64,000 nt of DNA from Eukaryota sp. TZLM1-RC (taxonomy: Eukaryota > Protista > Metamonada: BaSk clade). A program made the translations under genes and the position numbers. Shown piece after piece: positions 20,070-61,400 of the stretch. The stretch spans positions 62,001 to 126,000 of the forward strand of contig JAUPSS010000010.1 of assembly GCA_040285825.1 (NCBI GenBank), in the 5' to 3' direction. Under the pieces are notes generated by a model that was given only the letters and a program-made list of their open reading frames with translations, had not been told where the DNA came from and searched no databases. Positions within the stretch are counted from its first letter, which is position 1; every line of letters begins with the position of its first letter.

Positions 20070-21300
20070 TTATTTTTATTTTTTTTATTATTATTTTAAA
20101 GAACCAATTTTTATCAAATGAGCTAAATACTACGACAATTCAAACATTCCTTATCCAACTACCCCACTACTAGTGGTCAATACTCCAAAAAGACACTGAA
20201 CAACCAGCACAAAGCAAAACAGTACATGATTGACATTACTAAGCGGCCGCCTAAGATGCTCCAAGAGCGTTTTAAAGGCGACAGCAAGCTTTTCATCACA
20301 CATACGAATGTTTGAACCAGCAACAACATCCAATAAGAAGAGTGAGGATTCTATCTCAAAAACAACTGACGAAACCTTCAGTAAAGGAGTCACAAACTCT
20401 CTATTTCCATTACTAAGCGGACGTCTGAGAAGCTCCAAGAGCGGTTTAAAGGCGACAGCAAGCTTTTCATGAGAAGAGAAATGGGAACATCTGCTGATGG
20501 TCAAGTCAAATTGAACAAGAAACAAAATGCTTGTAAGACAGAGCTTCTATGGGTCTGACAAGAGGTGATCTAGTTGTTCCTGGTTTAAATGGTAGTTTTA
20601 CTATTTTGGACGCCATATCTATTGACCCTTGTAATTCCTCTAACGAACATCTCATTTACTCGGATGTAAATAATCCTCTTCTTGCAGGCGAAAAATATAA
20701 AATTGCTAAATATGCGAAACCCATTTCCTCGGTTAATGAAAATTCTCATGCCCAATATAATTTATGTCCCTTTGTTTTTTCTTTGCTTGGATCTCTAGAT
20801 AAGGCTGCTATGGCTTTCCTTGAGAATTTTGTTGTAGTTGTATAGGAAAGAACTGGAAGAATTTTCAATCGTGTTTACTGGCAAAACAGGATTGTATTTT
20901 CTATTTTTAAGGGAATGGTAAAACTAATTTCTGATTCACTATCTTCTTTTGGGAAATTTTCTGAATCTTTAGCAATTAATTGTTTTGATGTAGGGGAGGC
21001 AGGTTTTGAGGATGTGGAGTTTTAATTGTGTATTTCATATTTGTTGTTGAATAAAAATATAACCATACGCTAAATGCTTGTAAGAAGAGAACTAATTTGT
21101 CTCCAAATGGATGTTTCAAAGGATGATGTTATCAGTGGAAAAACATTCAGTAGAGTCAACAACAAAAGGAGACAACGTAGAGCAGTATGGTATAATGGGT
21201 AAGAAAGCAATAGGAGGGCCTGGACCGTGAAAAGGGAGGTTTTCAACAATCATGATGGAGAGGAAGGAAGTTCGATACTGGGGGGAAGAAAAAAAAATAT
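20070..21300 (-). mobile_element. Non-autonomous ORF-bearing passenger retroelement, divergent copy, split by a D insertion
   Basis: T-run/C-rich 5' end near 21297, A-rich tail at 20070, TSD, two 63-nt internal repeats; ORF 20151..20525 colinear with 50530..51087; 2-nt deletion near 21165. Confidence 0.88.
20539..21071 (+). mobile_element. Family D 3' fragment inserted in the passenger element
   Basis: 14-bp TSD aaatgcttgtaaga at 20525-20538 and 21072-21085; ends AGFEDVEF*. Confidence 0.92.
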
Positions 21301-32340: not shown

Positions 32341-32516
32341 TTTTTTTTTCTTCCCCCCAGCATCGAACTTCCATCCTCTCCATCATGATTGTTGAAAACC
32401 TCCCTTTTCATGGTCCAGGCCCTCCTATTGTTTTCTTAACCATTATTGAATACTGCTCTACGTTGTATCCCTCTTCTTTTTTGACTCTACTGAATGTTTT
32501 TCCACTGATAACATCA
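32341..32516 (+). mobile_element. Passenger element, 5' part only (third variant), inserted in a B(-) tail at 32148-32342
   Basis: T-run+cttccccc start; MIVENLPFHGPGPP.. in frame for 44 codons. Confidence 0.85.
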
Positions 32517-32530
32517 TTGAAAATTCTTCC

Positions 32531-35123
32531 AACGAACATCTCATTAACTCGGATGTAAATAATCCTCTTCTTGCAGGCGAAAAATATAAAATTGCTAAAT
32601 ATGCGAAACCCATTTCCTCGGTTAATGAAAATTCTCATGCCCAATATAATTTATGTCCATTTGTTTTTTCTTTGCTTGGATCTCTAGGTAAGGCTGCTAT
32701 GGCTTTCCTTGAGGATTTTGTTGTTGTTGTAAAGGAAAGAACTGGAAGAATTTTCAATCGTGTTTACTTTTTTAATTTAATTTTAATTTATTTTCAAAAC
32801 CACAGTCTAAAAGTCAATATCTTCAAAACAAGCTTCCACACAATCAAACCTTACAGCAGCAATGTTTTCATAATGTACACTGACAGACATTAAAGCTTTC
32901 GAAATCATTTTAGGAATTGATTTGAAAATAGTAAAAACAATACGATTTAGCCACAAGCGACGATCAAAACGCTTATTCATTCTTTTTTTTTAATAATTTT
33001 AATTTTATTCTAAACCTATAAATCAACATCTAAAAAATCCATCTCTCCCAAAACAAAAACACTAGATGCAACTCTCTCATAGTGAGATCCAAGAGAAAGC
33101 AAAGCATCGGAAACCATCTTCAACATCCCCTTAAAAATAGAAAACACAATTCTATTTTGCCAAAACAATCTGTTGAAATTTCTGCTAGTTCTTCTCTTTA
33201 CAATCATTTCAAAATCATCCAAAAAACGTAAAGCAGTTGGTGCAAGTGAACCAAAAAGGGAAAATACAAATGGATACAAATTGTATTTTGCATGCTGTAA
33301 AAGTAGGCCATAAATCTGGGGAATTTGATTTATCAAAACTGCAGATGAACTGTCCTTCAAATCAATCAAAAAATTTGCAAAAGCAGGATTTTCTTTCTTA
33401 GCCGTGCTAAGTCGAACAATGAAATCCTTGCTTTCAAATTTTTTCAAGAGATGTCGTTGGAGCTTTTTCAACGTAAATTTTAAAGAATACAAACTTCTGT
33501 CTGGAATTTCTTGAATGGATATGGGGAAACATGATTGCCATAAGTCGGGAGATAAACTGGATATTTCTTCTCTTAAGTTATCGAGGAATAGGCTATTTGT
33601 AGTTTCAAGAAGATTTTCGGCAAAAGAATATCTTCTAGAGAATTCAAATACAAAATTTTTTCCACCACCAATAAATGCAGCTTTGGTCAAATATTTTGAT
33701 GAATTGAATCCAACACCGCCAAGTTGAACATCAGAAAAAATATGATTTTTCAAAATTGATGGATCAACAGACATTAAATAAGCCAAAAATTCAGTACGTA
33801 TTTTGTTAAATTGTCTACAAAAATTGTAAGTTAGGGATGGAGGTAATGATCTCAGTAAATGAGTAATTTTTCCAGCATAACAAATTTTCAAAAGAAAAAA
33901 CTTAAGATGTTTTTCCAATTCAAGGGTCTTTATGACTTCTAGCTCTTTTTTAATTGAATTTAAATAGTTTTCAAGGCTATCAAGTGTCTTTTCGGCGGAA
34001 CCTAAATAGCAACCAAGAAAGCAGAAACTAGTTCAAGTATAATCAATATATGGAACTTCGAGGGAATTAATTATTAACTTAACATTTTTCCTTTTTTTTA
34101 TTTAATTTTAATTTATTATTAAACTACAGTCTAAAAGTCAATATCTTCAAAACAAGCTTCCACACCATCAAACCTCACAACAGCAATTTCTTCGTAATGT
34201 GCACTGACAGACATCAAAGCTTTCGAAATCATTTTAGGAATTGATTTGAAAATAAACATTTTTCCTAAACATTTTTCCTAGAAATACAAAAACATTTTTG
34301 AACATTCAACTCAAGACCTATGTATTGGTATAATGTAGCAGCTTCATTAGCAACCCTATCAATTGTACTTTCTGGACCAATACAAGAAATGTCATCCATG
34401 TAGGCTACCACTTGAAGGTCAGAATTTTCTTCTTTTAATTTTTTCAAGATTGGGTGAATTGCAAGACAAAAAAAGAAAGGACCTAAAGGGTCTCCTTGTT
34501 TAACTCCTGATAAAGAATCAAGATTAAAGGAATTAAAAATTAAATCAGATGAATTACCATAAAACCTATAAAAAAAGGTTTCGAGTTCAGGAAAATTTGA
34601 TTTGATTTCTTTCCAAATTGAATCTCTTTTCACTGAATTGAAAGCACTTTTGAAATCAAGATTAAAAATGCAACTATTTTCGTGACAATTGAAAAATAGA
34701 TCAGATGTCAAAGCCGCAACTGAAGCTCCATCTATGGTTTTGATTCCATACTGGAATGGAGAAAAGTATTCTTTAGCTTTTGTTGAAACTCGGTTAAAAA
34801 TTACTGAAGACATCAGGCGATAAATGGCTTCACCAATAGCAATTGGGCGAACTTTTCCATTAGGTTTAGTTAAAGCCACTAACCGTGATGCACTTAATTC
34901 TTTGGGTGGAACAATTTTCATTGTCAAAACATTTTGAAAAAAGGAACATAAATCTTTAATAATAAAGGAATTTTGGCGGCACACGGATTTCAACATATCA
35001 AAAGTTATTCCAGATGGACCTGGAGCTTTTCCAGATGGAAGACGAAAAATGGCCGTTTCAACTTCTTTTTCAGAAAGTGGATTTTGTTTCCAAAATTGTG
35101 AAGCAGGTGGTTTATCCAAATTA
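32531..35123. mobile_element. Mosaic: D(+) 32531-32768, A(-) tail, C(-) tail 32984-33299, A(-) 33300-35123 with nested A(-) tail 34093-34254
   Basis: ORFs 33016..33918 (A/C fusion) and 34265..35119; TSD aacatttttcct. Confidence 0.88.
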
Positions 35124-38100: not shown

Positions 38101-40460
38101 TAAATCAACATCTAAAAAATCCATCTCTCCCAAAACAAAAACACTAGATGCAACTCTCTCATAGTGAGAACCAAGAGACAGCAAAGCATCAGAAACCATC
38201 TTCAACATCCCCTTAAAAATAGAAAACACGATTCTATTTTGCCAAAACAATCTGTTGAAATTTCTGCCAGTTCTTCTCTTTACAATCATTTCAAAATCAT
38301 CCAAAAAACGTAAAGCAGTTGGTGCAAGTGAACCAAAAAGGGAAAATACAAATGGATACAAATTGTATTTTGCATGCTGTAGACTGGCCAATTTAGACAA
38401 AGGTTCATTGTATTTTTTGAATTTAAAATTTTCAGCATTTGAAAGGGGATCATGAATTTCAGAATTAACTAGCCTTTCATTTGAGGCATTACAAGGATCA
38501 ACAGACATTACATCCAATAAAATGAAGCTTCCATCTAATCCAGGTAATATGACATCACCTCTATTATTCTTATGAAAATCATCTTCAGAATCAAACAGAT
38601 TTGACAACAGAGGTTCCAAGAAGGATTCAATTCTATGAGATTTACACATACAATATAACTGGTCTCTTACAGCATCATGAACCTTGCTTCTAAAAGTAAT
38701 AAAATGTTTACAATTTAACAAATGAGTAGTTGTAATTTCTCGAGAACATTTACAAATTAAATTATGAGGTAAATTATCAGGCCAGATAAAGGAACGAAAT
38801 CTCATATTCAGAATCCAAGCAGAATCGGAAAAGAGAGTACCATAAACTTGTGGAATTGTTGTTACTAAGGCAGAAGAAGTACTGTCACACATATCTTGTA
38901 AAAGATTTGCAAAAGCGGGATTCTTTTTCTTGGCCAAGCCAAGTCTAATTCTATATCTAAAGAAGAAATTGAATCAAGTTCAATTTTCATTTTTTCCAAA
39001 ATAACTTGTAATTCATTCTGAATTTGAGGCACGTTTCCTAACCAACAACCAAGGAACTTAAAAGCATCACTACTATAATTAGTAAAAGGGACAATAGAAT
39101 CGTTTATCACGAGATCTTGAGCAGAAGATCCAATCAGAAGGCATTTGCTGGCATTAAGATGAAGCCCAATATTTTCATATGAATCGGCAATTTCTTGAGC
39201 AACCAATTCTAGTAAATCAAATGAACCAATCAAGGATATATCATCCATATAAGCAACTATTTTTATAGAAGGGTATTTTTGCTTAATGATATTTAAAGTT
39301 TTGTGAATAGCTAAACAAAACAATAACGGGCCTAAAGGATCACCTTGCTTCACACCAAAAGATGATTTAAGACCAAATGAATTAAAAATTAAATCCGATT
39401 CTTTCCCATAAAAATGGTAGAAAAAACTCGATAGCTCAGGAAAATCAGATTTAATAACTTCAAAAATTGCTTCTCGCTTTACAGAATTAAAAGCATTTTT
39501 AAAGTCGAGATTAAAAATAAAATTATTTTCCTCTGCATTAAAAAAGGTATCAGAGGCAATAGCAGCAACAGAAGCACCATCAATGGTTTTGATTCCAAAT
39601 TGATGAGGATTCAAAAATGTAGAAGCTTTGTCTTTGAGACGATCAAAGACAATTGATGCTAGCAAACGAGAAAGAGATTCACCAACAGCAATTGGGCGTA
39701 TTCCATCAGGTTTGATTCCGTTTCCAGGCTTTACTAAAGCAATCAGACGTGCAGCGAATAATTCAAATGGAGGATTAATTTTCAAAACAATTAATTGTTG
39801 AAAATAATGGGCTAGATCATCAGCAATTTCAGGAGCACTGGAACATGCTATTTTTAAGAGATCAAAAGAAATTCCAGATGGGCCTGCTGCTTTCCCCTTT
39901 GGTAATTTTTGAATAGCTTTAAGAACTTCAATTGCAGTAATAGGATTTTCAATCCAAAAAGGACACACATCAGGCTTGCTGCACTTGAAATTTTCTTGAG
40001 GATGCAACTTTTGAAGTTTTTCAAGGGTATCAGAGTTTGCATCAGCCAAAGAAGAGGAAAACAAAGACTGCTTTGCGGCACCATAACGACCACGTAAGCA
40101 CAATTTTCGGCAAATTTTTGATTTTACAATTCTTCTATTTCCAAATTTTTTCTTAAAACAATTTTTGTTTTTTCGAGCAAAATATTTCCAGAAGGATGAA
40201 ATATTCCACTTATTATTTTTCAATTCAGAAGTAAAATTTCTCATTTCCATTGAGAAGGGGATTGTGCTGGCTCAAACTAGCTCCACATTTGCAAAACAAA
40301 TCATTGGGCAAATTACAAGGCCATAAATAACAACGCATTCTCATAGCAGTGGTCCATTGGTCATCATTCAAAAGTAGGCCATAAATCTGGGGAATTTGAT
40401 TTATCAAAACTGCAGATGAACTGTCCTTCAAATCAAGCAAAAAATTTGAAAACGCAGGAT
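35124..40460 (-). mobile_element. Family A 3' part (35124-35810 and 40272-40460) split by family C
   Basis: ORF 35164.. ends ACFEDIDF*; resumes after a short duplicated tcaaac. Confidence 0.85.
35811..40271 (-). mobile_element. Family C long copy (RT to 3' end) containing A(+) 36827-37680 and C(-) 38065-38948
   Basis: ORFs 38865..40250, 37672..38094, 35846..36730 join colinearly; TSD ttctatatctaa at 38053-38064 and 38949-38960. Confidence 0.9.
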
Positions 40461-41302
40461 ACTTGATAGCCTTGAAAACTATTTAAATTCAATTAAAAAA
40501 GAGCTAGAAGTCATAAAGACCCTTGAATTGGAAAAACATCTTAAGTTTTTTCTTTTGAAAATTTGTTATGCTGGAAAAATTACTCATTTACTGAGATCAT
40601 TACCTCCATCCCTAACTTACAATTTTTGTAGACAATTTAACAAAATACGTACCCAATTTTTGGCTTATTTAATGTCTGTTGATCCATCAATTTTGAAAAA
40701 TCATATTTTTTCTGATGTTCAACTTGGCGGTGTTGGATTCAATTCATCAAAATATTTGACCAAAGCTGCATTTATTGGTGGTGGAAAAAATTTTGTATTT
40801 GAATTCTCTAGAAGATATCCTTTTGCCGAAAATCTTCTTGAAACTACAAATAGCTTATTCCTCGATAACTTTTTTTTATAAATTGAAATTTTTTTTCAAC
40901 GCTAACAAAACATTAAACAAAAAACTAGAACTCAATATCCTCAATACACGCATCAACATCATCAAATCTTTTCAGCGCGCGATTTTCATACTCTATTCCT
41001 TATTGTAACAGTGCTTTGGTCAACATTTCTGGAATTGCTTTAAGAATACTAAAAACAATTCTATTGTGCCAGAAATTGAAGTTCAATTCTTTTCCTGCTC
41101 TTTCTTTTATTAAACTTCTGAAATCTTCAAGAAATTTAATGCCAGATATTCCAATGTTACCAAAAAGAGAAACAGCAAATGGAACCAACTGATACTTGAC
41201 ATGCTCAACACGTCCTAGCTGAGATAAGGGTTCATTGTACTTTTTGATTTTGCTCTTTTCAGCAAAGCAAAGTGGAGTTTCATCTCTTTTAGCAAAATAT
41301 AT

Positions 41303-45048: not shown

Positions 45049-46787
45049 TTTTTTTTTCTCCCTCCCTTAGTCAACCCTTTCATATTTCACTTTCTGTCAA
45101 GGCGTCAAAGTCGTACTGTTTCTCTGTCAAAACGATGCCATTGGCTGATAGTGACTCTGATACTGATTGGAACGCCCAAGCAAAGATTCTACCAGTCAGA
45201 TCAAGCTCATCCATTCCACTTCCCCACTCTCCCCACAATACAAGCTATGCTCGAAATTCATCTCAAAAAAATTTTCATTCAAAAACTGATCATTGTACCA
45301 GAAAAAACACAGAAAAAACACCATTACGTTCCTTGCGTTCTGTTGCGCGTTCTATTAACAACTCCGTTTCTCGAAATTTGTTTTCTCCAGCTGAAACTGC
45401 AAAAAGTCAAAAGTCTATTTCTACTTTTAACTCAAAAATTGACAAAATTGAAAAAACTGAAAAAATGAAACCACTGCCATTAAAAGGTTCTAAAAAATGT
45501 TCGATTTGTGGTATCAGTGGTCATAATTCGAGAACGTGCCCTGAGAAACAAAAAAGAGAATTTGAATTAAAATCTGCTCAACAAATTCTCAAATGTTCTG
45601 TTCCAGCTGTTGCCGTTGTGAAAGGTGCTGCAAATAATGTTTCTGACGATCAACAGTTAAATGCTTCTAGTGTTCCCTCTTCTTCCCCTTCTGAAAACAG
45701 TAATTTTTGTTGTCCATTTTGCAAAAAAGATGTTGCAGATTCACGAAATGGTCGAAAACTTCTGTTTTGTACGAATTGTAAAGCCGTTGATACCGTAAGA
45801 CCCCCGATCCGGATCCCAGTAGAAATAAGTCCCGCCAGCACAATCCCCTTCTCAATGGAAATGAGAAATTTTACTTCTGAATTGAAAAATAATAAGTGGA
45901 ATATTTCATCCTTCTGGAAATATTTTGCTAGAAAAAACAAAAATTGTTTTAAGAAAAAATTTGGAAATAGAAAAATTGTAAAATCAAAAATTTGCCGTAA
46001 ATTGTGCTTACGTGGTCGTTATGGTGCCGCAAAGCAGTCTTTGTTTTCCTCTTCTTTGGCTGATGCAAACTCTGATACCCTTGAAAAACTTCAAAAGTTG
46101 CATCCTCAAGAAAATTTCAAGTGCAGCAAGCCTGAAGTGTGTCCTTTTTGGATTGAAAATCCTATTACTGCAATTGAAGTTCTTAAAGCTATTCAAAAAT
46201 TGCCAAAGGGGAAAGCAGCAGGCCCATCTGGAATTTCTTTTGATCTGTTAAAAATAGCGTGTTCCAGTGCTCCCGAAATTGCTGATGATCTAGCCCACTA
46301 TTTTCAACAATTGATTATTTTGAAAATTAATCCTCCATTTGAATTACTCGCAGCACGACTGATTGCTTTAGTAAAGCCTGGAAACGGAATCAAACCTGAT
46401 GGAATACGCCCAATTGCTGTTGGTGAATCTCTTTCTCGTTTGCTAGCATCAATTGTCTTCGATCGTGTCAAAGACAAAGCTTCTACATTTTTGAATCCTC
46501 ATCAATTTGGAATCAAAACAATTGATGGTGCTTCTGTTGCTGCTATTGCCTCTGATACCTTTTTTAATGCAGAGGAAAATAATTTTATTTTTAATCTCGA
46601 CTTTAAAAATGCTTTTAATTCTGTAAAGCGAGAAGCAATTTTTGAAGTTATTAAATCTGATTTTCCTGAGCTATCGAGTTTTTTCTACCATTTTTATGGG
46701 AAAGAATCAGATTTAATTTTTAATTCATTTGGTCTTAAATCATCTTCTGGAGTGAAGCAAGGAGATCCTTTAGGCCCATTATTGTTT
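45049..46787 (+). mobile_element. Family C 5'-complete, 3'-truncated copy (ATG at 45135)
   Basis: T-run-CTCCCTCCC terminus; MPLADSDSD.., CSICGISGHNSRTC, RT up to GDPLGPLLF. Confidence 0.92.
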
Positions 46788-46905: not shown

Positions 46906-49900
46906 TTTTTTTTTCTCCCTTCCCTGGTCAACCCTCTCATATTTCACTTTCTGTCACGGCGTCCAACTTGTACTGTGTCTTTGCCAAAACGATGCCATTG
47001 ACTGATAGTGACTCTGATACTGATTGGAACGCCCAAGCAAAGATTCTACCCATCAGATCAAGCTCATCCCCTTCACTTCTCCACTCTCCCCACCCTTCAA
47101 GCTATGCTCGAAATTCTTCTCAAAAAAATTTGAAAATTTTTAAAAAGATTTTTGCCTTTGTGTGATGCCCCTGATATTATGTCTGAAAAAGTGCAAAAAA
47201 GAAGACAAACCTGTTCCAAATGTGGCAAGGTTGGTCATAACATTAGAAAATGTCCTGATATTATTACCGAAAAAATGAGACTGAAAACCAATATTTCTAT
47301 TGTTAATAGTTTGCAAATGCCATCCGAACTGAATCTTCCTCCTGTTCCCAATGTTTCTGCTGATGATGTTAATTATGATTTAAATATTGATCAAACTCAT
47401 TTACCAAAAACTGTTGCTCCTGATCCTACGGATAATGTCTTGAAACATAATTGTCCTTTTTGCAAAAAGTTCCTCTCTAATTCTTCTAATGGTCGCCCTC
47501 TTTTGTTTTGTTTTGACTGTCAAACAAGTGATTCTCTTCGTGCACCTGTTAAAATTCCTGTAGAGGTGAGTCCTGCCAGTACTGTTCCTATGTCAATGGA
47601 AATGCGTTCTTTTTCTTCGCAATTGAAATTAAACAAATGGAACATAACTAGATTTTGGAAATTCTTTGCCAAAAAGAATAAGAAGAAAATTAATTACAAA
47701 CCAAAACAGAGAAATGCTAATTCATCTTTTCAAGCAAGAAAATTGTTTTTGAGAGGTAGATATGGAAGCGGATTAAAAAATATTTTTTCGGGAAAACTGG
47801 CTGATAACAATCTCGAAACTGTTGAAAAATTGAAATCTCTCCATCCAACTGAAAATTTTTGCCCCAGTAAGCCTTCTATTTGTCAATATTGGCTCGAAAA
47901 TCCATTTCAGGCTCAAGAAGTATTGAATGCCGTTGCTAAATTACCAAAAGGAAAAGCTGCTGGTCCTTCAGGCATTTCCTTTGATTTGTTGAAAACTGCC
48001 TGTAAAAATGTTCCTGAAATTGTTGAGGATCTTGCTTCCTATTTTCAAAATTTAATGTGTTTGAATTATGTTCCTCCGCCTGAATTGATTGCTGCCCGTT
48101 TAGTTGCTTTAGTTAAACCTGGTAAAGGTGACAAACCTGATGGAGTTAGACCAATTGCTATTGGAGAGTCATTAACCAGATTGCTTTCTTCCCTTATTTT
48201 TAACAGAATTTCTACTGAAGCAAGGGACTATTTGAAGCCTTTCCAATTTGGTATAAAAACTGTTGAAGGTGCTTCTGTTGCTTCAATGACTTCAGATGTT
48301 TTTTTCAATAGTTAACAACATCAATATATTTTCAATTTGGATTTCAAAAATGCTTTCAATTCTGTGAAACGTTATTGTATTTTTGATGTGCTTCTTCAAG
48401 ATTTTCCTAAACTTTCTGCGTATTTTTATTTATTTTATGGAAAAAAAATCAGACTTAATTTTTGACTCCTTTACCCTTGAATCTTCTTCTGGTGTGAAAC
48501 AAGGTGATCCTCTTGGCCCTTTGCTGTTTTGTTTGGCTATTCATAATATTATTAAAATGACACAACAAGATTTCCCTGATTTGCGTATTGTTGCCTATAT
48601 GGATGACATTTCTATTATTGGTTCTTTTGAAAGCATTTCTAGGGTCTCTGAAGACATTGCGGCGAAATACAAAGAAATTGGCTTAGCTTTGAACTCATCT
48701 AAATGTCTCTTGATTGGTAGAGAAAAACAATCTTTGATGGTTGGTGAAGCTCAGATTCCTTTTATCAATTATGACCAACAAGCTTTTGAGTTTCTTAGAT
48801 GTTGGCTTGGCAATTTGGATGAAATTTATTCCCAGTTTAACAATTTATTGGAGAAGTTTGACAAGGATCTTAGTTTTATAGCTGAATGTGACATTGAGAA
48901 ACACATCAAATTTTTTATTTTAAAAATTTGTTATTCTGGAAAATTCACTCATATTTTAAGGTCAACTCCCCCATCGGTATCTCTCAATTTTTGCAGATCT
49001 TTTAACAAACTTCGAGTCAAATTTTTTTCTTCTTTATTAGAAGTAAATGAATCTTTAATTCGAAGTCATGTATTTTGTTCAGCAGATTTGGGTGGAATTG
49101 GATTCACCAAATCTTCGATTCTGTGTAAAGCTGCATTTTTGGGAGGTGGTAAAAATTTTGTTTTTGAATTTTTCCAAAGGTTCCCTTTTGATGTTCATCT
49201 GATCAATGGTGAATCAAATTTTTACTTGAATCAACTGCAATTTGAATTAGAAAATTTGCCTAGTGATATCTGGATTCAGTGTTTCCCTCAAAATGTTCAA
49301 GAAATTCCCACCCGATCACTTCCAAATTGACGTTTTTGCTTGAAAAAGCTTCAGCACCATCTGGTTAAATTATATGAAGGCTTGGATTATGAAGTAAGAC
49401 TTGGCTTGGCCAAAACTAAAAATCCCGCTTTCGGTAATTTTTTAAAGGATATTCGTGATAGTTCAGCTGCTGCTTTAGTAACTCAAGTTCCCTCTGTTTA
49501 TGGACTTTTGTTAAAAAACAATGAATGGCTTCTAAACATGCGCTTTCGTTGTTTTCTGTGGCCAAACAATTTGCCCAATCATTTAACTTGTAAATGTGGT
49601 AAACCTCTTTTGTTTACTCATCTTTTGAACTGTAAACATTTCATTACGTTCAGAAGCAAAGTGCATGATAACGTCCGGGACCAAATTTATGTAATGTGCA
49701 AATCATATCGAGTAGATTCCTTTTTAGAACCGCTGTTATCAAAATTAATTCTTGATGATCCCAATATTGATAGTACGCGTTACAACAGAGCTTCTATGGG
49801 TCTGACTAGAGGTGATCTAGTTGTTCCTGGTTTAAATGGTAGTTTTACTATTTTGGACGCCATGTCTATTGACCCTTGTAATTCCTCTAACGAACATCTC

Positions 49901-50197
49901 ATTAACTCGGATGTAAATAATCCTCTTCTTGCAGGCGAAAAATATAAAATTGCTAAATATGCGAAACCCATTTCCTCGGTTAATGAAAATTCTCATGCCC
50001 AATATAATTTATGTCCATTTGTTTTTTCTTTGCTTGGATCTCTAGGTAAGGCTGCTATGGCTTTCCTTGAGGATTTTGTTGTTGTTGTAAAGGAAAGAAC
50101 TGGAAGAATTTTCAATCGTGTTTACTGGCAAAACAGGATTGTATTTTCTATTTTTAAGGGAATGGTAAAACTAATTTCTGATTCACTATCTTCTTTT
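46906..50197 (+). mobile_element. Family D near-full-length copy (ATG at 46992), with stops and frameshifts; unit length about 3.4 kb
   Basis: ORFs 46968..47165, 47152..48315, 48383..49330, 49340..50221 cover knuckle, RT, zinc motif and RLE. Confidence 0.93.
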
Positions 50198-50529
50198 TTT
50201 TTAAATTTAATTTTATTCTAAACCTATAAATCAACATCTAAAAAATCCATCTCTCCCAGAACAAAAACATTAGATGCAACTCTCTCATAGTGAGAACCAA
50301 GAGACAGCAAAGCATCGGAAACCATCTTCAACATCCCCTTAAAAATAGAAAACACAATTCTATTTTGCCAAAACAATCTGTTGAAATTTCTCCCAGTTCT
50401 TCTCTTTACAATCAATTCAAAATCATCCAAAAAACGTAAAGCAGTTGGTGCAAGTGAACCAAAAAGGGAAAATTTTTTTTTCTTCCCCCCTCCCCCCACC
50501 TTCCGCGTCGAACTTCCTTCCTCTCCATC

Positions 50530-51087
50530 ATGATTGTTGAAAACCTCCCTTATCACGGTCCAGGCCCTCCTATTGTTTTCTCAACAATTATTCCATATTG
50601 CTCTGCGTTGTCTCCCCCTTCTTTGTTGACTCTACTGAATGTTCTTCCACTGATAACATCATCCTTCGAAACATCAATTTGGAGACAAATTAGTTCCCTT
50701 CTCACAAGCATTTTGTTTCTTGTTCAATTTGACTTGACCATCAGCAGATGTTTGCATTTCTCTTCTCATGAAAAGCTTGCTGTCGCCTTTAAACCGCTCT
50801 TGGAGCTTCTTAGACGGCCGCTTAGTAATGGAAGTAGAAAGTTTGTGATCTGTTTACTGAAGGGTTGGTTAGTTGTTCTTGAGGTCAAATTCTCACTCTT
50901 CTTATTGGATGTTGTTGCTGGTTCTAACTATCGTATGTGTGATGAAAAGCTTGCTGTCGCCTTTAAAACGCTCTTGGAGCATCTCAGACGGCCGCTTAGT
51001 AATGTCAATCATGTACTTTTTGGTTGTGTGCTGGTTGTTCAGTGTCTTTTTGGAGTATTGACTACTAGTAGTGGAGTAGTTGGATGA
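50530..51087 (+). CDS. Hypothetical 185-aa hydrophobic protein of the passenger element with duplicated EKLAVAFKxLLExLRRPLSN motif
   Basis: ATG-to-stop ORF covers ~83% of the element; synonymous-biased differences and TGA/TAA stop swap versus the copy at 20151-21253. Confidence 0.6.
   Translation: MIVENLPYHGPGPPIVFSTIIPYCSALSPPSLLTLLNVLPLITSSFETSIWRQISSLLTSILFLVQFDLTISRCLHFSSHEKLAVAFKPLLELLRRPLSNGSRKFVICLLKGWLVVLEVKFSLFLLDVVAGSNYRMCDEKLAVAFKTLLEHLRRPLSNVNHVLFGCVLVVQCLFGVLTTSSGVVG
50768..51004 (+). repeat. Two 63-nt direct repeats (50768-50830, 50942-51004), 174-nt period
   Basis: atgaaaagcttgctgtcgcctttaaa(c/a)cgctcttggagc(t/a)tct(t/c)agacggccgcttagtaatg; also at 20234-20296/20408-20470 (-) and 56973-57035/57147-57209. 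Confidence 0.95.
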
Positions 51088-51603
51088 GGAATTTCTGAAT
51101 TGTCGTAGTATTTAGCTAATTTAATAAAGAAATTTACGAGAAAAAAAAGGGAAAATACAAATGGATACAAATTGTATTTTGCATGCTGTAGACTGGCCAA
51201 TATGGACAAAGGTTCATTGTATTTTTGAATTTAAAATTTTCAGCATTTGAAAGAGGATTATGAATTTCAGAATTAACAAGCCTTTCATTTGAGGCATTAC
51301 AAGGATCAACAGACATTACATCCAATAAAATGAAGCTTCCATCTAATCCAGGTAATATAACATCACCTCTATTATTCTTATGAAAATCATTTTCAGCATC
51401 AAACAGATTTGACAACAAAGGTTCCAAGAAGGATTCAATTCTATGAGATTTACACATACAATATAACTGGTCTCTTACAGCATCATGAACCTTGCTTCTA
51501 AAAGTAATAAAATGTTTACAATTTAACAAATGAGTAGTTGTAATTTCTCGAGAACATTTACAAATTAAATTATGAGGTAAATTATCAGGCCAGATAAAGG
51601 AAC

Positions 51604-52894
51604 TTTATTAGAAGTAAATGAATCTTTAATTCGAAGTCATGTATTTTGTTCAGCAGATTTGGGTGGAATTGGATTCACCAAATCTTCGATTCTGTGTAAA
51701 GCAGCATTTTTGGGAGGTGGTAAAAATTTTGTTTTTGAATTTTTCCAAAGGTTCCCTTTTGATGTTCATCTGATCAATGGTGAATCAAATTTTTACTTGA
51801 ATCAACTGCAATTTGAATTAGAAAATTTGCCTAGTGATATCTGGATTCAGTGTTTTCCTCAAAATGTTCAAGAAATTCCCACTCGATCACTTCCAAATTT
51901 ACGTTTTTGCTTGAAAAAGCTTCAGCACCATCTGGTTAAATTATATGAAGGCTTGGATTATGAAGTAAGACTTGGCTTGGCCAAAACTAAAAATCCCGCT
52001 TTCGGTAATTTTTTAAAGGATATTCGTGATAGTTCTGCTGCTGCTTTAGTAACTCAAGTTCCCTCTGTTTATGGACTTTTGTTAAAAGACAATGAATGGC
52101 TTCTAAACATGCGTTTTCGTTGTTTTCTGTGGCCAAACAATTTGCCCAATCATTTAACTTGTAAATGTGGTAAACCTCTTTTGTTTACTCATCTTTTGAA
52201 CTGTAAACATTTCATTACGTTTAGAAGCAAAGTGCATAATAACGTCAGGGACCAAATTTATGTAATGTGCAAATCATATCGTGTAGATTCCTTTTTAGAA
52301 CCGCTGTTATCAAAATTAATTCTTGATGATCCCAATATTGATAGTACGCGTTACAACAGAGCTTCTATGGGTCTGACTAGAGGTGATCTAGTTGTTCCTG
52401 GTTTAAATGGTAGTTTTACTATTTTGGACGCCATGTCTATTGACCCTTGTGATTCCTCTAACGAACATCTCATTAACTCGGATGTAAATAATCCTCTTCT
52501 TGCAGGCGAAAAATATAAAATTGCTAAATATGCGAAACCCATTTCCTCGGTTAATGAAAATTCTCATGCCCAATATAATTTATGTCCATTTGTTTTTTCT
52601 TTGCTTGGATCTCTAGGTAAGGCTGCTATGGCTTTCCTTGAGGATTTTGTTGTAGTTGTAAAGGAAAGAACTGGAAGAATTTTCAATCATGTTTACTGGC
52701 AAAACAGGATTGTATTTTCTATTTTTAAGGGAATGATAAAACTAATTTCTGATTCACTATCTTCTTTTGGGAAATTTTCTGAATCTTTAGCAATTAATTG
52801 TTTTGATGTAGGGGAGGCAGGTTTTGAGGATGTCGAGTTTTAATTGTGTATTTCATATTTGTTGTTGAATAAAAATAAATAAGGTAAAAAAAAA
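51604..52894 (+). mobile_element. Family D 3' half
   Basis: ORF 51659..52843 ending AGFEDVEF*. Confidence 0.92.
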
Positions 52895-54218: not shown

Positions 54219-57200
54219 GCTTTAAAAATGCTTTTAATTCTGTAAAGCGAGAAGCAATTTTTGAAGTTATTAAATCTGATTTTCCTGAGCTATCGAGTTT
54301 TTTCTACCATTTTTATGGGAAAGAATCAGATTTAATTTTTAATTCATTTGGTCTTAAATCATCTTCTGGAGTGAAGCAAGGAGATCCTTTAGGCCCATTA
54401 TTGTTTTCAAACGGAAAAAATATGCAAATCCTTTAAAAGAATTGAAACATGTTCGCCATGTAGATTACCAAATTTGCCCATTTGCTATATCGTTGTATGG
54501 TCGTCTTGGAAAAACTGCTATGAATTTTTTTTTCTCCCTTCCCTGGTCAACCCTCTCATATTTCACTTTCTGTCACGGCGTCCAACTTGTACTGTGTCTT
54601 TGCCAAAACGATGCCATTGACTGATAGTGACTCTGATACTGATTGGAACGCCCAAGCAAAGATTCTACCCATCAGATCAAGCTCATCCCCTTCACTTCTC
54701 CACTCTCCCCACCCTTCAAGCTATGCTCGAAATTCTTCTCAAAAAAATTTGAAAATTTTTAAAAAAGATTTTTTGCCTTTGTGTGATGCCCCTGATATTA
54801 TGTCTGAAAAAGTGCAAAAAAGAAGACAAACCTGTTCCAAATGTGGCAAGGTTGGTCATAACATTAGAAAATGTCCTGATATTATTACCGAAAAAATGAG
54901 ACTGAAAACCAATATTTCTATTGTTAATAGTTTGCAAATGCCATCCGAACTGAATCTTCCTCCTGTTCCCAATGTTTCTGCTGATGATGTTAATTATGAT
55001 TTAAATATTGATCAAACTCATTTACCAAAAACTGTTGCTCCTGATCCTACGGATAATGTCTTGAAACATAATTGTCCTTTTTGCAAAAAGTTCCTCTCTA
55101 ATTCTTCTAATGGTCGCCCTCTTTTGTTTTGTTTTGACTGTCAAACAAGTGATTCTCTTCGTGCACCTGTTAAAATTCCTGTAGAGGTGAGTCCTGCCAG
55201 TTCTGTTCCTATGTCAATGGAAATGCGTTCTTTTTCTTCGCAATTGAAATTAAACAAATGGAACATAACTAGATTTTGGAAATTCTTTGCCAAAAAGAAT
55301 AAGAAGAAAAATTAATTACAAACCAAAACAGAGAAATGCTAATTCATCTTTTCAAGCAAGAAAATTGTTTTTGAGAGGTAGATATGGAAGCGGATTAAAA
55401 AATATTTTTTCGGGAAAACTGGCTGATAACAATCTCGAAACTGTTGAAAAATTGAAATCTCTCCATCCAACTGAAAATTTTTGCCCCAGTAAGCCTTCTA
55501 TTTGTCAATATTGGCTCGAAAATCCATTTCAGGCTCAAGAAGTATTGAATGCCGTTGCTAAATTACCAAAAGGAAAAGCTGCTGGTCCTTCAGGCATTTC
55601 CTTTGATTTGTTGAAAACTGCCTGTAAAAATGTTCCTGAAATTGTTGAGGATCTTGCTTCCTATTTTCAAAATTTAATGTGTTTGAATTATGTTCCTCCG
55701 CCTGAATTGATTGCTGCCCGTTTAGTTGCTTTAGTTAAACCTGGTAAAGGTGACAAACCTGATGGAGTTAGACCAATTGCTATTCGAGAGTCATTAACCA
55801 GATTGCTTTCTTCCCTTATTTTTAACAGAATTTCTACTGAAGCAAGGGACTATTTGAAGCCTTTCCAATTTGGTATAATAACGTCCGGGACCAAATTTAT
55901 GTAATGTGCAAATCATATCGAGTAGATTCCTTTTTAGAACCGCTGTTATCAAAATTAATTCTTGATGATCCCAATATTGATAGTACGCGTTACAACAGAG
56001 CTTCTATGGGTCTGACTAGAGGTGATCTAGTTGTTCCTGGTTTAAATGGTAGTTTTACTATTTTGGACGCCATGTCTACTGACCCTTGTAATTCCTCTAA
56101 CGAACATCTCATTAACTCGGATGTAAATAATCCTCTTCTTGCAGGCGAAAAATATAAAATTGCTAAATATGCGAAACCCATTTCCTCGGTTAATGAAAAT
56201 TCTCATGCCCAATATAATTTATGTCCATTTGTTTTTTCTTTGCTTGGATCTCTAGGTAAGGCTGCTATGGCTTTCCTTGAGGATTTTGTTGTTGTTGTAA
56301 AGGAAAGAACTGGAAGAATTTTCAATCGTGTTTACTGGCAAAACAGGATTGTATTTTCTATTTTTAAGGGAATGGTAAAACTAATTTCTGATTCACTATC
56401 TTCTTTTTTTTAAATTTAATTTTATTCTAAACCTATAAATCAACATCTAAAAAATCCATCTCTCCCAGAACAAAAACATTAGATGCAACTCTCTCATAGT
56501 GAGAACCAAGAGACAGCAAAGCATCAGAAACCATCTTCAACATCCCCTTAAAAATAGAAAACACAATTCTATTTTGCCAAAACAATCTGTTGAAATTTTT
56601 CCCAGTTCTTCTCTTTACAATCAATTCAAAATCATCCAAAAAACGTAAAGCAGTTGATGCAAGTGAACCAAAAAGGGAAAATTTTTTTTTCTTCCCCCCC
56701 CCACCTTCCGCGTCGAACTTCCTTCCTCTCCATCATGATTGTTGAAAACCTCCCTTATCACGGTCCAGGCCCTCCTATTGTTTTCTCAACAATTATTCCA
56801 TATTGCTCTGCGTTGTCTCCCCCTTCTTTGTTGACTCTACTGAATGTTCTTCCACTGATAACATCATCCTTCGAAACATCAATTTGGAGACAAATTAGTT
56901 CCCTTCTCACAAGCATTTTGTTTCTTGTTCAATTTGACTTGACCATCAGCAGATGTTTGCATTTCTCTTCTCATGAAAAGCTTGCTGTCGCCTTTAAACC
57001 GCTCTTGGAGCTTCTTAGACGGCCGCTTAGTAATGGAAGTAGAAAGTTTGTGATCTGTTTACTGAAGGGTTGGTTAGTTGTTCTTGAGGTCAAATTCTCA
57101 CTCTTCTTATTGGATGTTGTTGCTGGTTCTAACTATCGTATGTGTGATGAAAAGCTTGCTGTCGCCTTTAAAACGCTCTTGGAGCATCTCAGACGGCCGC

Positions 57201-58436
57201 TTAGTAATGTCAATCATGTACTTTTTGGTTGTGTGCTGGTTGTTCAGTGTCTTTTTGGAGTATTGACTACTAGTAGTGGAGTAGTTGGATGAGGAATTTC
57301 TGAATTGTCGTAGTATTTAGCTAATTTAATAAAGAAATTTACGAGAAAAAAAAAGGGAAAATACAAATGGATACAAATTGTATTTTGCATGCTGTAGACT
57401 GGCCAATTTGGACAAAGGTTCATTGTATTTTTTGAATTTAAAATTTTCAGCATTTGAAAGAGGATTATGAATTTCAGAATTAACAAGCCTTTCATTTGAG
57501 GCATTACAAGGATCAACAGACATTACATCCAATAAAATGAAGCTTCCATCTAATCCAGGTAATATAACATCACCTCTATTATTCTTATGAAAATCATTTT
57601 CAGCATCAAACAGATTTGACAACAAAGGTTCCAAGAAGGATTCAATTCTATGAGATTTACACATACAATATAACTGGTCTCTTACAGCATCATGAACCTT
57701 GCTTCTAAAAGTAATAAAATGTTTACAATTTAACAAATGAGTAGTTGTAATTTCTCGAGAACATTTACAAATTAAATTATGAGGTAAATTATCAGGCCAG
57801 ATAAAGGAACTTTATTAGAAGTAAATGAATCTTTAATTCGAAGTCATGTATTTTGTTCAGCAGATTTGGGTGGAATTGGATTCACCAAATCTTCGATTCT
57901 GTGTAAAGCAGCATTTTTGGGAGGTGGTAAAAATTTTGTTTTTGAATTTTTCCAAAGGTTCCCTTTTGATGTTCATCTGATCAATGGTGAATCAAATTTT
58001 ACTTGAATCAACTGCAATTTGAATTAGAAAATTTGCCTAGTGATATCTGGATTCAGTGTTTTCCTCAAAATGTTCAAGAAATTCCCACTCGATCACTTCC
58101 AAATTTACGTTTTTGCTTGAAAAAGCTTCAGCACCATCTGGTTAAATTATATGAAGGCTTGGATTATGAAGGAAGACTTGGCTTGGCCAAAACTAAAAAT
58201 CCCGCTTTCGGTAATTTTTTAAAGGATATTCGTGATAGTTCTGCTGCTGCTTTAGTAACTCAAGTTCCCTCTGTTTATGGACTTTTGTTAAAAGACAATG
58301 GATGGCTTCTAAACATGCGTTTTCGTTGTTTTCTGTGGCCAAACAATTTGCCCAATCATTTAACTTGTAAATGTGGTAAACCTCTTTTGTTTACTCATCT
58401 TTTGAACTGTAAACATTTCATTACGTTTAGAAGCAA
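54219..58436 (+). repeat. Segmental duplicate of ~46601-52230 with a ~1.4-kb deletion inside D
   Basis: Same C/A/D/C(-)/passenger/D junction series; deletion junction ggtataa|taacgtccggga near 55878. Confidence 0.9.
56683..57349 (+). mobile_element. Passenger element, duplicate of 50474-51143 (ORF 56735-57292)
   Basis: Same TSD and identical ORF translation. Confidence 0.92.
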
Positions 58437-61400
58437 GGTTTTTGGCTTATTTAATGTCTGTTGATCCATCAATTTTGAAAAATCATATTTTTTCTGATGT
58501 TCAACTTGGCGGTGTTGGATTCAATTCATCAAAATATTTGACCAAAGCTGCATTTATTGGTGGTGGAAAAAATTTTGTATTTGAATTCTCTAGAAGATAT
58601 CCTTTTGCCGAAAATCTTCTTGAAAATACAAATAGCCTATTCCTGGATAACTTAAGAGAAGAAATATCCAGTTTATCTCCCGACTTATGGCAATCATGTT
58701 TCCCCATATCCATTCAAGAAATTCCAGACAGAAGTTTATATTCATTAAAATTTGCGTTGAAAAAGCTCCAACGACATCTTTTGAAAAATTTTGAAAACAA
58801 GGATTTTATTGTTCGACTTAGCACGGCTAAGAAAGAAAATCCTGCTTTGCCAATTTTTTGATTGATTTGAAGGACAGTTCATCTGCAGTTTTGATAAATC
58901 AAATTCCCCAGATTTATGGTTTATTTTTGAATGACGACCAATGGACCACTGCTATGAGAATGCGTTGTTATTTATGGCCTTGTAATTTGCCCAATGATTT
59001 GTTTTGTAAATGTGGAGCTGGTTTGACATTATCACATTTATTTAATTGTAATAGATATATTTCCTATCGTTCTACGTTGCATGATGCAGTCAGAGATCAA
59101 ATCCATGCAATGTGTAATTCCTATCATATTGAATCTTTTGTAGAACCTTTGTTGAGGTCTCTTGATATAAATGAAAGCGTAAGAGATTCAGAATATGGAA
59201 AATATGGATTTTTTTTTCTCCCTCCCTTAGTCAACCCTTTCATATTTCACTTTCTGTCAAGGCGTCAAAGTCGTACTGTTTCTCTGTCAAAACGATGCCT
59301 TTGGCTGATAGTGACTCTGATACTGATTGGAACGCCCAAGCAAAGATTCTACCAGTCAGATCAAGCTCATCCATTCCACTTCCCCACTCTCCCCACAATA
59401 CAAGCTATGCTCGAAATTCATCTCAAAAAAATTTTCATTCAAAAACTGATCATTGTACCAGAAAAAACACAGAAAAACCACCATTACGTTCCTTGCGTTC
59501 TGTTGCGCGTTCTATTAACAACTCCGTTTCTCGAAATTTGTTTTCTCCAGCTGAAACTGCAAAAAGTCAAAAGTCTATTTCTACTTTTAACTCAAAAATT
59601 GACAAAATTGAAAGAACTGAAAAAATGAAACCACTGCCATTAAAAGGTTCTAAAAAATGTTCGATTTGTGGTATCAGTGGTCATAATTCGAGAACGTGCC
59701 CTGAGAAACAAAAAAGAGAATTTGAATTAAAATCTGCTCAACAAATTCTCAAATGTTCTGTTCCAGCTGTTGCCGTTGTGAAAGGTGCTGAAAATAATGT
59801 TTCTGACGATCAACAGTTAAATGCTTCTAGTGTTCCCTCTTCTTCCCCTTCTGAAAACAGTAATTTTTGTTGTCCATTTTGCAAAAAAGATGTTGCAGAT
59901 TCACGAAATGGTCGAAAACTTTTGTTTTGTACGAATTGTAAAGCCGTTGATACCGTAAGACCCCCGATCCGGATCCCAGTAGAAATAAGTCCCGCCAGCA
60001 CAATCCCCTTCTCAATGGAAATGAGAAATTTTACTTCTGAATTGAAAAATAATAAGTGGAATATTTCATCCTTCTGGAAATATTTTGCTAGAAAAAACAA
60101 AAATTGTTTTAAGAAAAAATTTGGAAATAGAAAAATTGCAAAATCAAAAATTTGCCGAAAATTGTGCTTACGTGGTCGTTATGGTGCCGCAAAGCAGTCT
60201 TTGTTTTCCTCTTCTTTGGCTGATGTAAACTCTGATACCCTTGAAAAACTCCAAAAGTTGCATCCTCATGAAAATTTCAAGTGCAGCAAGCCTGAAGTGT
60301 GTCCTTTTTGGATTGAAAATCCTATTACTGCAATTGAGGTTCTTAAAGCTATTCAAAAATTACCTAAGGGGAAAGCAGCAGGCCCATCTGGAATTTCTTT
60401 TGATCTCTTAAAAATAGCGTGTTCCAGTGCTCCCGAAATTGCTGATGATCTAGCCCACTATTTTCAACAATTAATTGTTTTGAAAATAAATCCTCCATTT
60501 GAATTGCTCGCAGCACGTCTGATTGCTTTAGTAAAGCCTGGAAACGGAATCAAACCTGATGGAATACGCCCAATTGCTGTTGGTGAATCTCTTTCTCGTT
60601 TGCTGGCATCAATTGTCTTCGATCGTGTCAAAGACAAAGCCTCTACATTTTTGAATCCTCATCAATTTGGAATCAAAACAATTGATGGTGCTTCTGTTGC
60701 TGCTATTGCCTCTGATACCTTTTTTTTAATGCAGAGGAAAATAATTTTATTTTTAATCTCGACTTTAAAAATGCTTTTAATTCTGTAAAGCGAGAAGCAA
60801 TTTTTGAAGTTATTAAATCTGATTTTCCTGAGCTATCGAGTTTTTTTCTACCATTTTTATGGTAAAGAATCAGATTTAATTTTAATTCATTTGCTCTTAA
60901 ATCATCTTCTGGTGTGAAGCAAGGTGACCCTTTAGGTCCATTATTGTTTTGTTTGGCTATTCACAAAACCTTAAATATCATTAAGCAAAAATACCCTTCT
61001 ATAAAAATAGTTGCTTATATGGATGATATATCCTTGATTGGTTCATTTGATTTACTAGAATTGGTTGCTCAAGAAATTGCCGATTCATATGAAAATATTG
61101 GGCTTCATCTTAATGCCAGCAAATGCCTTCTGATTGGCTCTTCTGCTCAAGACCTCGTGATAAACGATTCTATTGTCCCTTTTACTAATTATAGTAGTGA
61201 TGCTTTTAAGTTCCTTGGTTGTTGGTTAGGAAATGTGCCTCAAATTCAGAATGAATTGCAAGTTATTTTGGAAAAAATGAAAATTGAACTTGATTCAATT
61301 TCTTCTTTAGATATAGAAAAGCATATTAAATTTTTTATGCTTAAAATTTGCTACACTGGGAGAATAACCCACATTTTGAGATCTTGTGCTCCTTCCATAG

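Follow-up and report, generated by a model that had tools for sequence, protein, structure and literature searches.

A discrete, low-copy non-autonomous retroposon, probably LINE-dependent, lies at positions 50474-51143 of the 64,000-nucleotide stretch of genomic DNA analysed here (hereafter the window), which comes from strain TZLM1-RC, that is Skoliomonas litria, a free-living soda-lake metamonad (PMC11603281). The family is real, and its hallmarks are target-site duplications (TSDs), empty sites, subfamilies with their own 3' tags and a 5' motif shared with the resident LINEs. An ORF makes up 83% of the 670-bp unit, and judged from its sequence the element is probably coding. That the ORF is kept open in the master copies of the family is the reading we prefer, with a probability of roughly 0.55, and the signs of purifying selection on it are suggestive.

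Anatomy of the insertion

The layout proposed in an earlier note on this DNA, namely a T-run and C-rich 5' end, a leader, an ATG, 185 codons, about 35 nt, AATAAA and an A-run, was recovered in the copy at 50.5 kb (Table 1), where the leader measures 56 nt before the ATG at 50530, the TGA stop occupies 51085-51087, and the distance from the stop to AATAAA is 35 nt. The A-tails described in that note exist as a short terminal A-run, which comprises only 3-8 A, however, and merges into TSDs that start with A. A Pfam search found neither a reverse transcriptase (RT) nor an endonuclease in the unit, as had been claimed, and the TSDs, the empty sites and the absence of LINE similarity agree with the earlier view that it is a separate unit rather than the end of a larger element.

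Table 1. Positions of the element, its parts, its other copies and the empty sites in the window
Feature	Position	Strand	Remarks
Complete non-autonomous retroposon copy	50474..51143	+	TSD-bounded, empty site known; one of 14 independent family copies
Left TSD AAAAAGGGAAAAT	50461..50473	+	Identical 13 nt again at 51144-51156 and once at 38335-38347
Right TSD	51144..51156	+	Repeats AAAAAGGGAAAAT of 50461-50473
5'-terminal motif, T10 followed by C-rich run	50474..50499	+	Strict T6+/C-rich pattern
ATG-started ORF, 185 codons, TGA stop	50530..51087	+	Hypothetical protein in the NCBI annotation
First 63-nt direct repeat, codons 80-100	50768..50830	+	95% identity to 50942-51004; lowest diversity in the element
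Central variable segment, codons 101-125	50830..50904	+	Highest diversity in the element
Second 63-nt direct repeat, codons 138-158	50942..51004	+	95% identity to 50768-50830
AATAAA polyadenylation signal	51123..51128	+	In middle and young copies; GATAAA in the oldest subfamily
Subfamily-specific 3' tag TTTACGAG and A-run	51133..51143	+	Common to the young copies
Empty site for the 50.5-kb insertion	38335..38347	+	Paralogous LINE copy, AAAAAGGGAAAAT once, uninterrupted
Empty site for the 20-kb insertion	40919..40930	+	Paralogous copy, AAAAAACTAGAA once
Duplicate copy	56683..57348	+	99.4% identical, flanks and TSD identical, within a 2.57-kb duplication
Older copy	20070..21300	-	12-bp TSD AAAAAACTAGAA, 2-nt deletion, nested LINE 3' fragment
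5' fragment, T-run to element position 189	32341..32517	+	Inside antisense LINE sequence

Copies and empty sites within the window

BLAST of the unit against the window returned four places, the same ones that had been named before. The copies at 20 kb, 32 kb and 50.5 kb are independent insertions and the one at 56.7 kb is a duplicate, which the BLAST matches and the duplication boundaries confirm: the segments 49665-52233 and 55875-58439 form a segmental duplication of 99.3% identity, and the 56.7-kb copy sits inside it and is therefore not an independent insertion. The TSDs of 13 and 12 bp reported earlier are real, since the two empty sites carry the respective sequence only once.

The 20-kb copy (BLAST match 20110-21275, minus strand) is about 92% identical to the 50.5-kb copy and is split by a 530-bp 5'-truncated LINE 3' fragment at 20538-21072 with its own 13-bp TSD, which is A-initial like the TSDs of the element. 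For the 32-kb copy, the BLAST match at 32360-32517 (plus strand) corresponds to element positions 32-189, with the T-run starting at 32341. All three insertions had been called 5'-complete; the 32-kb copy does retain its 5' end, yet it is only a 5' fragment, for which a later deletion is the simplest account because some 10 nt of host LINE sequence are absent at the right junction. Another nested or inverted junction lies within 32517-32620: 13 bases past this fragment, the antisense LINE sequence gives way to sense sequence from a different LINE family.

A small family with successive subfamilies

The ORF protein matched only hypothetical proteins of Eukaryota sp. TZLM1-RC, comprising 12 annotated paralogues (P0001-P0012), and the accessions of the two copies of the window are filed under one of them, P0008. 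DNA was fetched around 11 annotated paralogues and revealed one more, unannotated partial copy (L007:16373-16772, hereafter L007b), giving 14 independent copies in all, 11 of which were found via annotated ORFs, an ascertainment bias. The sequence examined for the motif and for LINE similarity totalled 477 kb. No copy of the element was present in nine extra LINE-rich loci (187 kb) fetched via a multi-copy LINE protein, and nhmmer added no copies beyond those found by BLAST, while fragments of diverged copies were found in the contigs of three runs from one sample, none registered as RNA, which carried no information on expression, ends or strand. With 12 paralogues and none in the nine further LINE-rich loci, the family is small, probably some 15-30 copies against hundreds of LINE copies, the LINE protein clusters having 97-216 annotated members each.

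Each sampled copy is TSD-bounded, 5'-truncated or otherwise disrupted. The TSDs, nearly all of them A-initial, measure 14 bp in L001, 12 bp in L004, about 10 bp in L006, 11 bp in L010 and about 10 bp in L011, so that they span about 10-14 bp across copies apart from one of about 100 bp in L007. There, a direct duplication of about 100 bp, about 4% diverged, flanks L007:9850-10730, with six extra bases at the 5' junction. Three copies (L005, L009 and L007b) are 5'-truncated and have no T-run, and the T-run is therefore part of the full-length RNA rather than added at integration.

The sense strand of the element is the ORF strand. The reverse orientation was considered in view of the 32-kb fragment, which retains the T-run end, a poly(A) if read on the opposite strand. 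It was rejected on the A8 tails behind AATAAA in L001, L004 and L006, on the truncation of the T-run end in L005, L009 and L007b, and on the motif that LINE 5' ends share.

The antisense position inside LINEs that had been taken as a general feature holds for the three copies of the window but not genome-wide, where copies stand in both orientations relative to nearby LINE fragments and three have no LINE within 1.5 kb. It is thus a local pattern of the window and not an insertion rule.

The copies form a ladder-like tree in which old, middle and young subfamilies, diverging from each other by about 10%, can be told apart. They carry a short subfamily-specific 3' tag, placed after the internal AATAAA(A)n and before the terminal A-run: TTTAC(GAG) in the young copies, L002, L005 and L007; G(T)CCA in L003, L011 and L007b; ATTGGTTCTTT in the 20-kb copy and L008; and CCGTATAGT in L010. 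Wherever the TSDs are clear, the tags lie inside them, as expected of daughters that turn into sources and whose transcripts run a few bases into the adjoining flank before being cleaved. The differing tags together with the ladder-like tree suggest successive master copies.

Several individual loci display rearrangements or neighbours of their own. In L010 (9960-10441), exactly 174 nt between the two 63-nt repeats were lost, in frame (58 codons), and the position of the loss exactly between the repeats points to recombination or slippage between them. The minus strand of L007:16373-17088 shows a LINE whose initial ~300 nt (T-run, leader and about 70 codons) run directly into the final ~400 nt of the element; the element part starts with a piece of an extra repeat unit, and NCBI calls a 143-aa fusion ORF. 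The structure may be a template-switch chimera; its formation in a single event was considered and set aside, the outer flanks deriving from two different repeats. A young intact copy, L004:9950-10713, is followed, in the same orientation, by a RING-kinase-LRR host gene whose ATG lies about 90 nt beyond the end of the copy, and read-through or promoter effects on this gene are conceivable.

Exclusion of known SINE classes and of a LINE derivative

The element is not a classical pol III SINE with a tRNA, 7SL or 5S head, as the earlier reading had maintained. ARAGORN detected no tRNA in it, Rfam gave merely a sub-threshold chance match (19.9 bits against a gathering score of 40), T5 runs on the sense strand inside the unit (e.g. 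around 51014 and 51050) constitute internal pol III terminators, and the unit carries AATAAA. A SINE/LINE pair of the stringent type was also considered and rejected, no homology between the 3' end of the element and LINE 3' ends being found in the 477 kb. A LINE-derived coding element of the HAL1/HeT-A type met the same fate, as tblastn against all loci found family members only, and no zinc knuckle or other Pfam domain was detected in the 185-aa protein. Judged by these sequence comparisons, the element is not a deletion derivative of a LINE.

Link to the resident LINEs

Among solved structures, R2 proteins are nearest to the RT of the resident LINEs, before L1 ORF2p. In the C-terminal region of the LINE protein, a nuclease-like stretch comes after a CCHC motif, and Pfam found no apurinic-endonuclease domain, so that the label RLE-type appears reasonable. 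At the 3' ends of these LINEs, the stop is succeeded by a very short UTR, then by AATAAA and an A-run; their 3' UTRs differ, and no sequence was found in common with the 3' end of the element. A nucleotide search in the 477 kb likewise revealed no similarity of the element to LINEs apart from the short 5' motif. The integration signature of the element, that is TSD length, A-run and AATAAA, matches that of the resident LINE.

The strict T6+/C-rich motif occurred at 23 sites in the 477 kb, comprising 14 LINE 5' ends, nine element 5' ends and nothing else. The LINE 5' ends start with T8-9 and CTCCCTCCC, and at 45049 and 14457 (minus strand) the T-run and C-rich motif are followed by a leader and an ATG. 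This strict form links the element specifically to the LINEs. In many host genes of L001, L002, L003, L006 and L011 (e.g. L006:3390-3550), the ATG is preceded at 5-60 nt by a CT-rich stretch and the stop is followed at 20-40 nt by an AATAAA-like signal, which points to very short UTRs and a putative pyrimidine-rich initiator in the host organism. In view of these looser CT-rich stretches, the T-run/C-rich motif probably represents a general initiator in a strong form. From the shared motif and integration signature, we infer that these LINEs mobilise the element in trans.

LINE fragments themselves abound in the public annotation (loci L005 and L012-L020): hundreds of them are listed as hypothetical proteins, one cluster at 90% identity comprises 216 members, and a 264-aa product recurs without any difference at nine or more loci.

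The 185-codon ORF and its predicted product

An ATG-started ORF of at least 185 codons appeared in one of 20,000 dinucleotide-preserving shuffles with both strands counted, and the ORF is accordingly far too long for chance. Against the host codon table, its frame scored -0.004 bits per codon and the other five frames -0.34 to -0.60; the score of the ORF is at the low end of real host genes, and the contrast with the other frames partly reflects the absence of stops. The ORF is most likely translated.

With a GRAVY of 0.72, the 185-aa protein is hydrophobic, and its C-terminus may contain a membrane segment. Both a word-indexed protein search and an exhaustive HMM search of 1.84 billion representatives found only the paralogues of the same genome, the ESM Atlas gave no usable match, and Pfam assigned no family. 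The proteome of Skoliomonas sp. GEM-RC1, which is inside the searched database, contained no homologue, an absence that says little because a conserved host protein is just 48% identical between both species. The recognition score of a language model was low, in the range of shuffled sequences, and AlphaFold2 with a shallow alignment predicted helices at a mean pLDDT of 45.7 and a pTM of 0.28. Given the lack of homologues and domains, the low recognition score and the low confidence of the fold, nothing was found to back the toxin/antidote, targeting or accessory role that had been envisaged for the protein.

Selection on the ORF

For codons 45-100 and 126-185, the 50.5-kb and 20-kb copies differ by 13.5 synonymous and 5.5 replacement differences, close to the ratio of about 12:4 estimated by hand in the earlier note; this ratio holds for that pair only, pairs with L009 giving a dN/dS of about 1 (about 1.1). 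Overall dN/dS between the two copies was 0.39, and that of codons 1-44 was 0.76. The 2-nt deletion and the TGA/TAA stop swap described before are both present, and the position of the stop is retained despite the swap.

Selection was further assessed on 13 copies by the patterns of variants and by a branch-model likelihood summing over unobserved states. Variants shared by at least two copies comprised 16 synonymous and 27 replacement changes (omega about 0.7, P 0.19), and private variants comprised 28 synonymous and 81 replacement changes plus two stops (omega about 1.2). Codon positions were used evenly among the 13 copies, conservation of the ORF was not above that of the 3' UTR, and the one-ratio omega of 0.88 was not different from 1. 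The codon branch model on the nucleotide tree, by comparison, gave an omega of 0.48 for internal and 1.15 for terminal branches (two ratios versus one, P 0.028). Across codon-frequency settings, the internal omega ranged over 0.48-0.56, the terminal omega over 1.15-1.36 and the two-ratio P over 0.026-0.028, and the P for the test of an internal omega of 1 varied with the codon-frequency model between 0.027 and 0.077 (0.036-0.077 in alternative settings). The codon bootstrap interval for the internal omega was 0.27-0.91. When all six frames were compared, the ORF frame had the lowest internal omega and was the sole one significantly below 1, the +1 frame reaching 2.45.

Post hoc removal of the central 25 codons lowered the internal omega to 0.27 (P 0.0008), and the central segment (codons 101-125) had an omega of about 2.2, which was not significant. 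Its shared changes over all copies amount to 11 replacement and two synonymous ones, and the flanking repeats are the most conserved part.

No stop or frameshift is shared between copies: each of them, like the TE insertion, is found in one copy only, and subfamily-level indels are confined to the UTRs. Terminal branches carry about six disruptive events per 111 substitutions, so that about two would be expected internally, and none was seen (P about 0.1). The purifying selection claimed earlier is consistent with the branch model (internal omega about 0.5, P about 0.03), although the simple counts are near neutral. The evidence for selection is not decisive, because informative changes are few, with only about 40 on internal branches, and because most copies were found through annotated ORFs.

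Alternative origins

The copies could be processed pseudogenes made repeatedly by the LINEs from an unsampled, highly expressed orphan host gene for a small hydrophobic protein. The unit has the look of a short host mRNA, with short UTRs, AATAAA and poly(A), host genes are themselves CT-rich before the ATG and have AATAAA-like signals soon after the stop, and the copy number is low; a functional parent with dead copies would also fit an internal omega below 1 with terminal values near 1, the low internal omega then reflecting constraint on the host gene. However, none of the 14 sampled copies is a parent free of retroposition hallmarks, and at least four different 3' tags that track the subfamilies lie inside TSD-bounded inserts, so that one fixed parent locus cannot have supplied all of them. 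Moreover, the strict 5' motif is absent from the inspected host genes; the missing GEM-RC1 homologue also speaks against a host gene, though weakly for the reason given above. The family is thus probably not the pseudogene set of one host gene, and we regard this origin as unlikely.

Equally doubtful in our view is a non-coding, SINE-like retroposon with a relic ORF, which would have begun as a retrocopied mRNA and now spread as RNA, the omega signal being due to chance. The overall omega indistinguishable from neutrality, the flat use of codon positions, the L009 pairs, and a protein unlike known proteins in recognition score, HMM search and AlphaFold2 model are all compatible with it; with some two internal disruptive events expected, finding none is unremarkable, and the closest protist analogue, EhSINE1, is polyadenylated without a plausible ORF (PMC2996970). 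Against a relic stand the reduced internal omega with the ORF frame as the only one significantly below 1, an ORF that has stayed open across the divergence of the subfamilies with subfamily-level indels only in the UTRs, and a stop position held through the TGA/TAA swap. An ORF kept open in the master copies remains the reading that we favour.

Proposed mechanism and implications

In the model that we propose, RNA polymerase II would begin transcription of the element at the initiator-like 5' motif, a motif that every full-length copy would take along, and the RNA would be cleaved and polyadenylated after AATAAA. The LINE protein would then act on this RNA in trans and, by target-primed reverse transcription, copy it into A-rich target sites. 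New masters could arise from full-length daughters, which would explain the subfamily-specific tag between the internal and the terminal A-runs. The ORF would be kept open under moderate constraint in masters and would decay neutrally after insertion. Our best guess is that the product benefits the element, either through translation as such (RNA stability, closeness to the nascent LINE protein) or through the small hydrophobic protein. The narrower proposal that the 185-aa orphan is a functional element-encoded factor, made only from masters, which would help the passenger RNA to exploit the machinery of the R2-like LINE or promote its own spread in some other way, seems to us rather improbable. 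Were it true, this would be a two-component retroelement system in which the protein of the non-autonomous partner is unrelated to any LINE protein, and the replacement-rich codons 101-125 between the conserved repeats might be a fast-evolving interface.

Almost without exception, the non-autonomous partner of a LINE is a non-coding RNA (SINE) or a dead retrocopy, and the few coding non-autonomous elements, HAL1 and HeT-A, carry LINE-derived Gag-like genes. R2-like LINEs are usually regarded as strict about their own RNA. If the ORF is indeed kept open in masters, the element would represent a different way of parasitising a LINE, with an unrelated orphan gene and only the 5' motif of the LINE. 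The shared motif is also a candidate initiator in this metamonad lineage, for which we know of no description of promoters. For the annotation of S. litria, copies of the element and hundreds of LINE fragments are presently counted as hypothetical proteins.

Comparison with known systems

EhLINE1 of Entamoeba histolytica carries a restriction-like endonuclease. Its partner EhSINE1 is 500-600 bp long, not tRNA-derived, transcribed, polyadenylated and TSD-flanked, relies on a LINE to be copied, and has internal direct repeats of varying number, hundreds of copies and no plausible ORF (PMC2996970). The present element resembles it as a protist element of 670 bp that is not tRNA-derived, is TSD-flanked and contains internal direct repeats, but differs in being largely ORF and in numbering tens of copies, and shares no sequence with its LINEs save the short 5' motif.

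Retrocopies made by L1 are intronless, mRNA-like and poly(A)-bearing, with TSDs that are often A-initial, and are copied in trans (PMC5753468). The mRNA-like structure, the A-run and the A-initial TSDs of the element are in line with them. Unlike such retrocopies, it forms a multi-copy family with subfamilies, changing 3' tags and a LINE-shared 5' motif, no parent gene was found, and its partner LINE is R2-like instead of L1-like.

HeT-A of Drosophila is a non-autonomous non-LTR element that is protein-coding and obtains its RT in trans. HAL1, or 'half-L1', is likewise a non-autonomous non-LTR element that still codes for protein and uses RT in trans (PMC5753468). The proteins of both are relatives of LINE ORF1/Gag, in contrast to the 185-aa protein here, which has no detectable similarity to LINE or known proteins.
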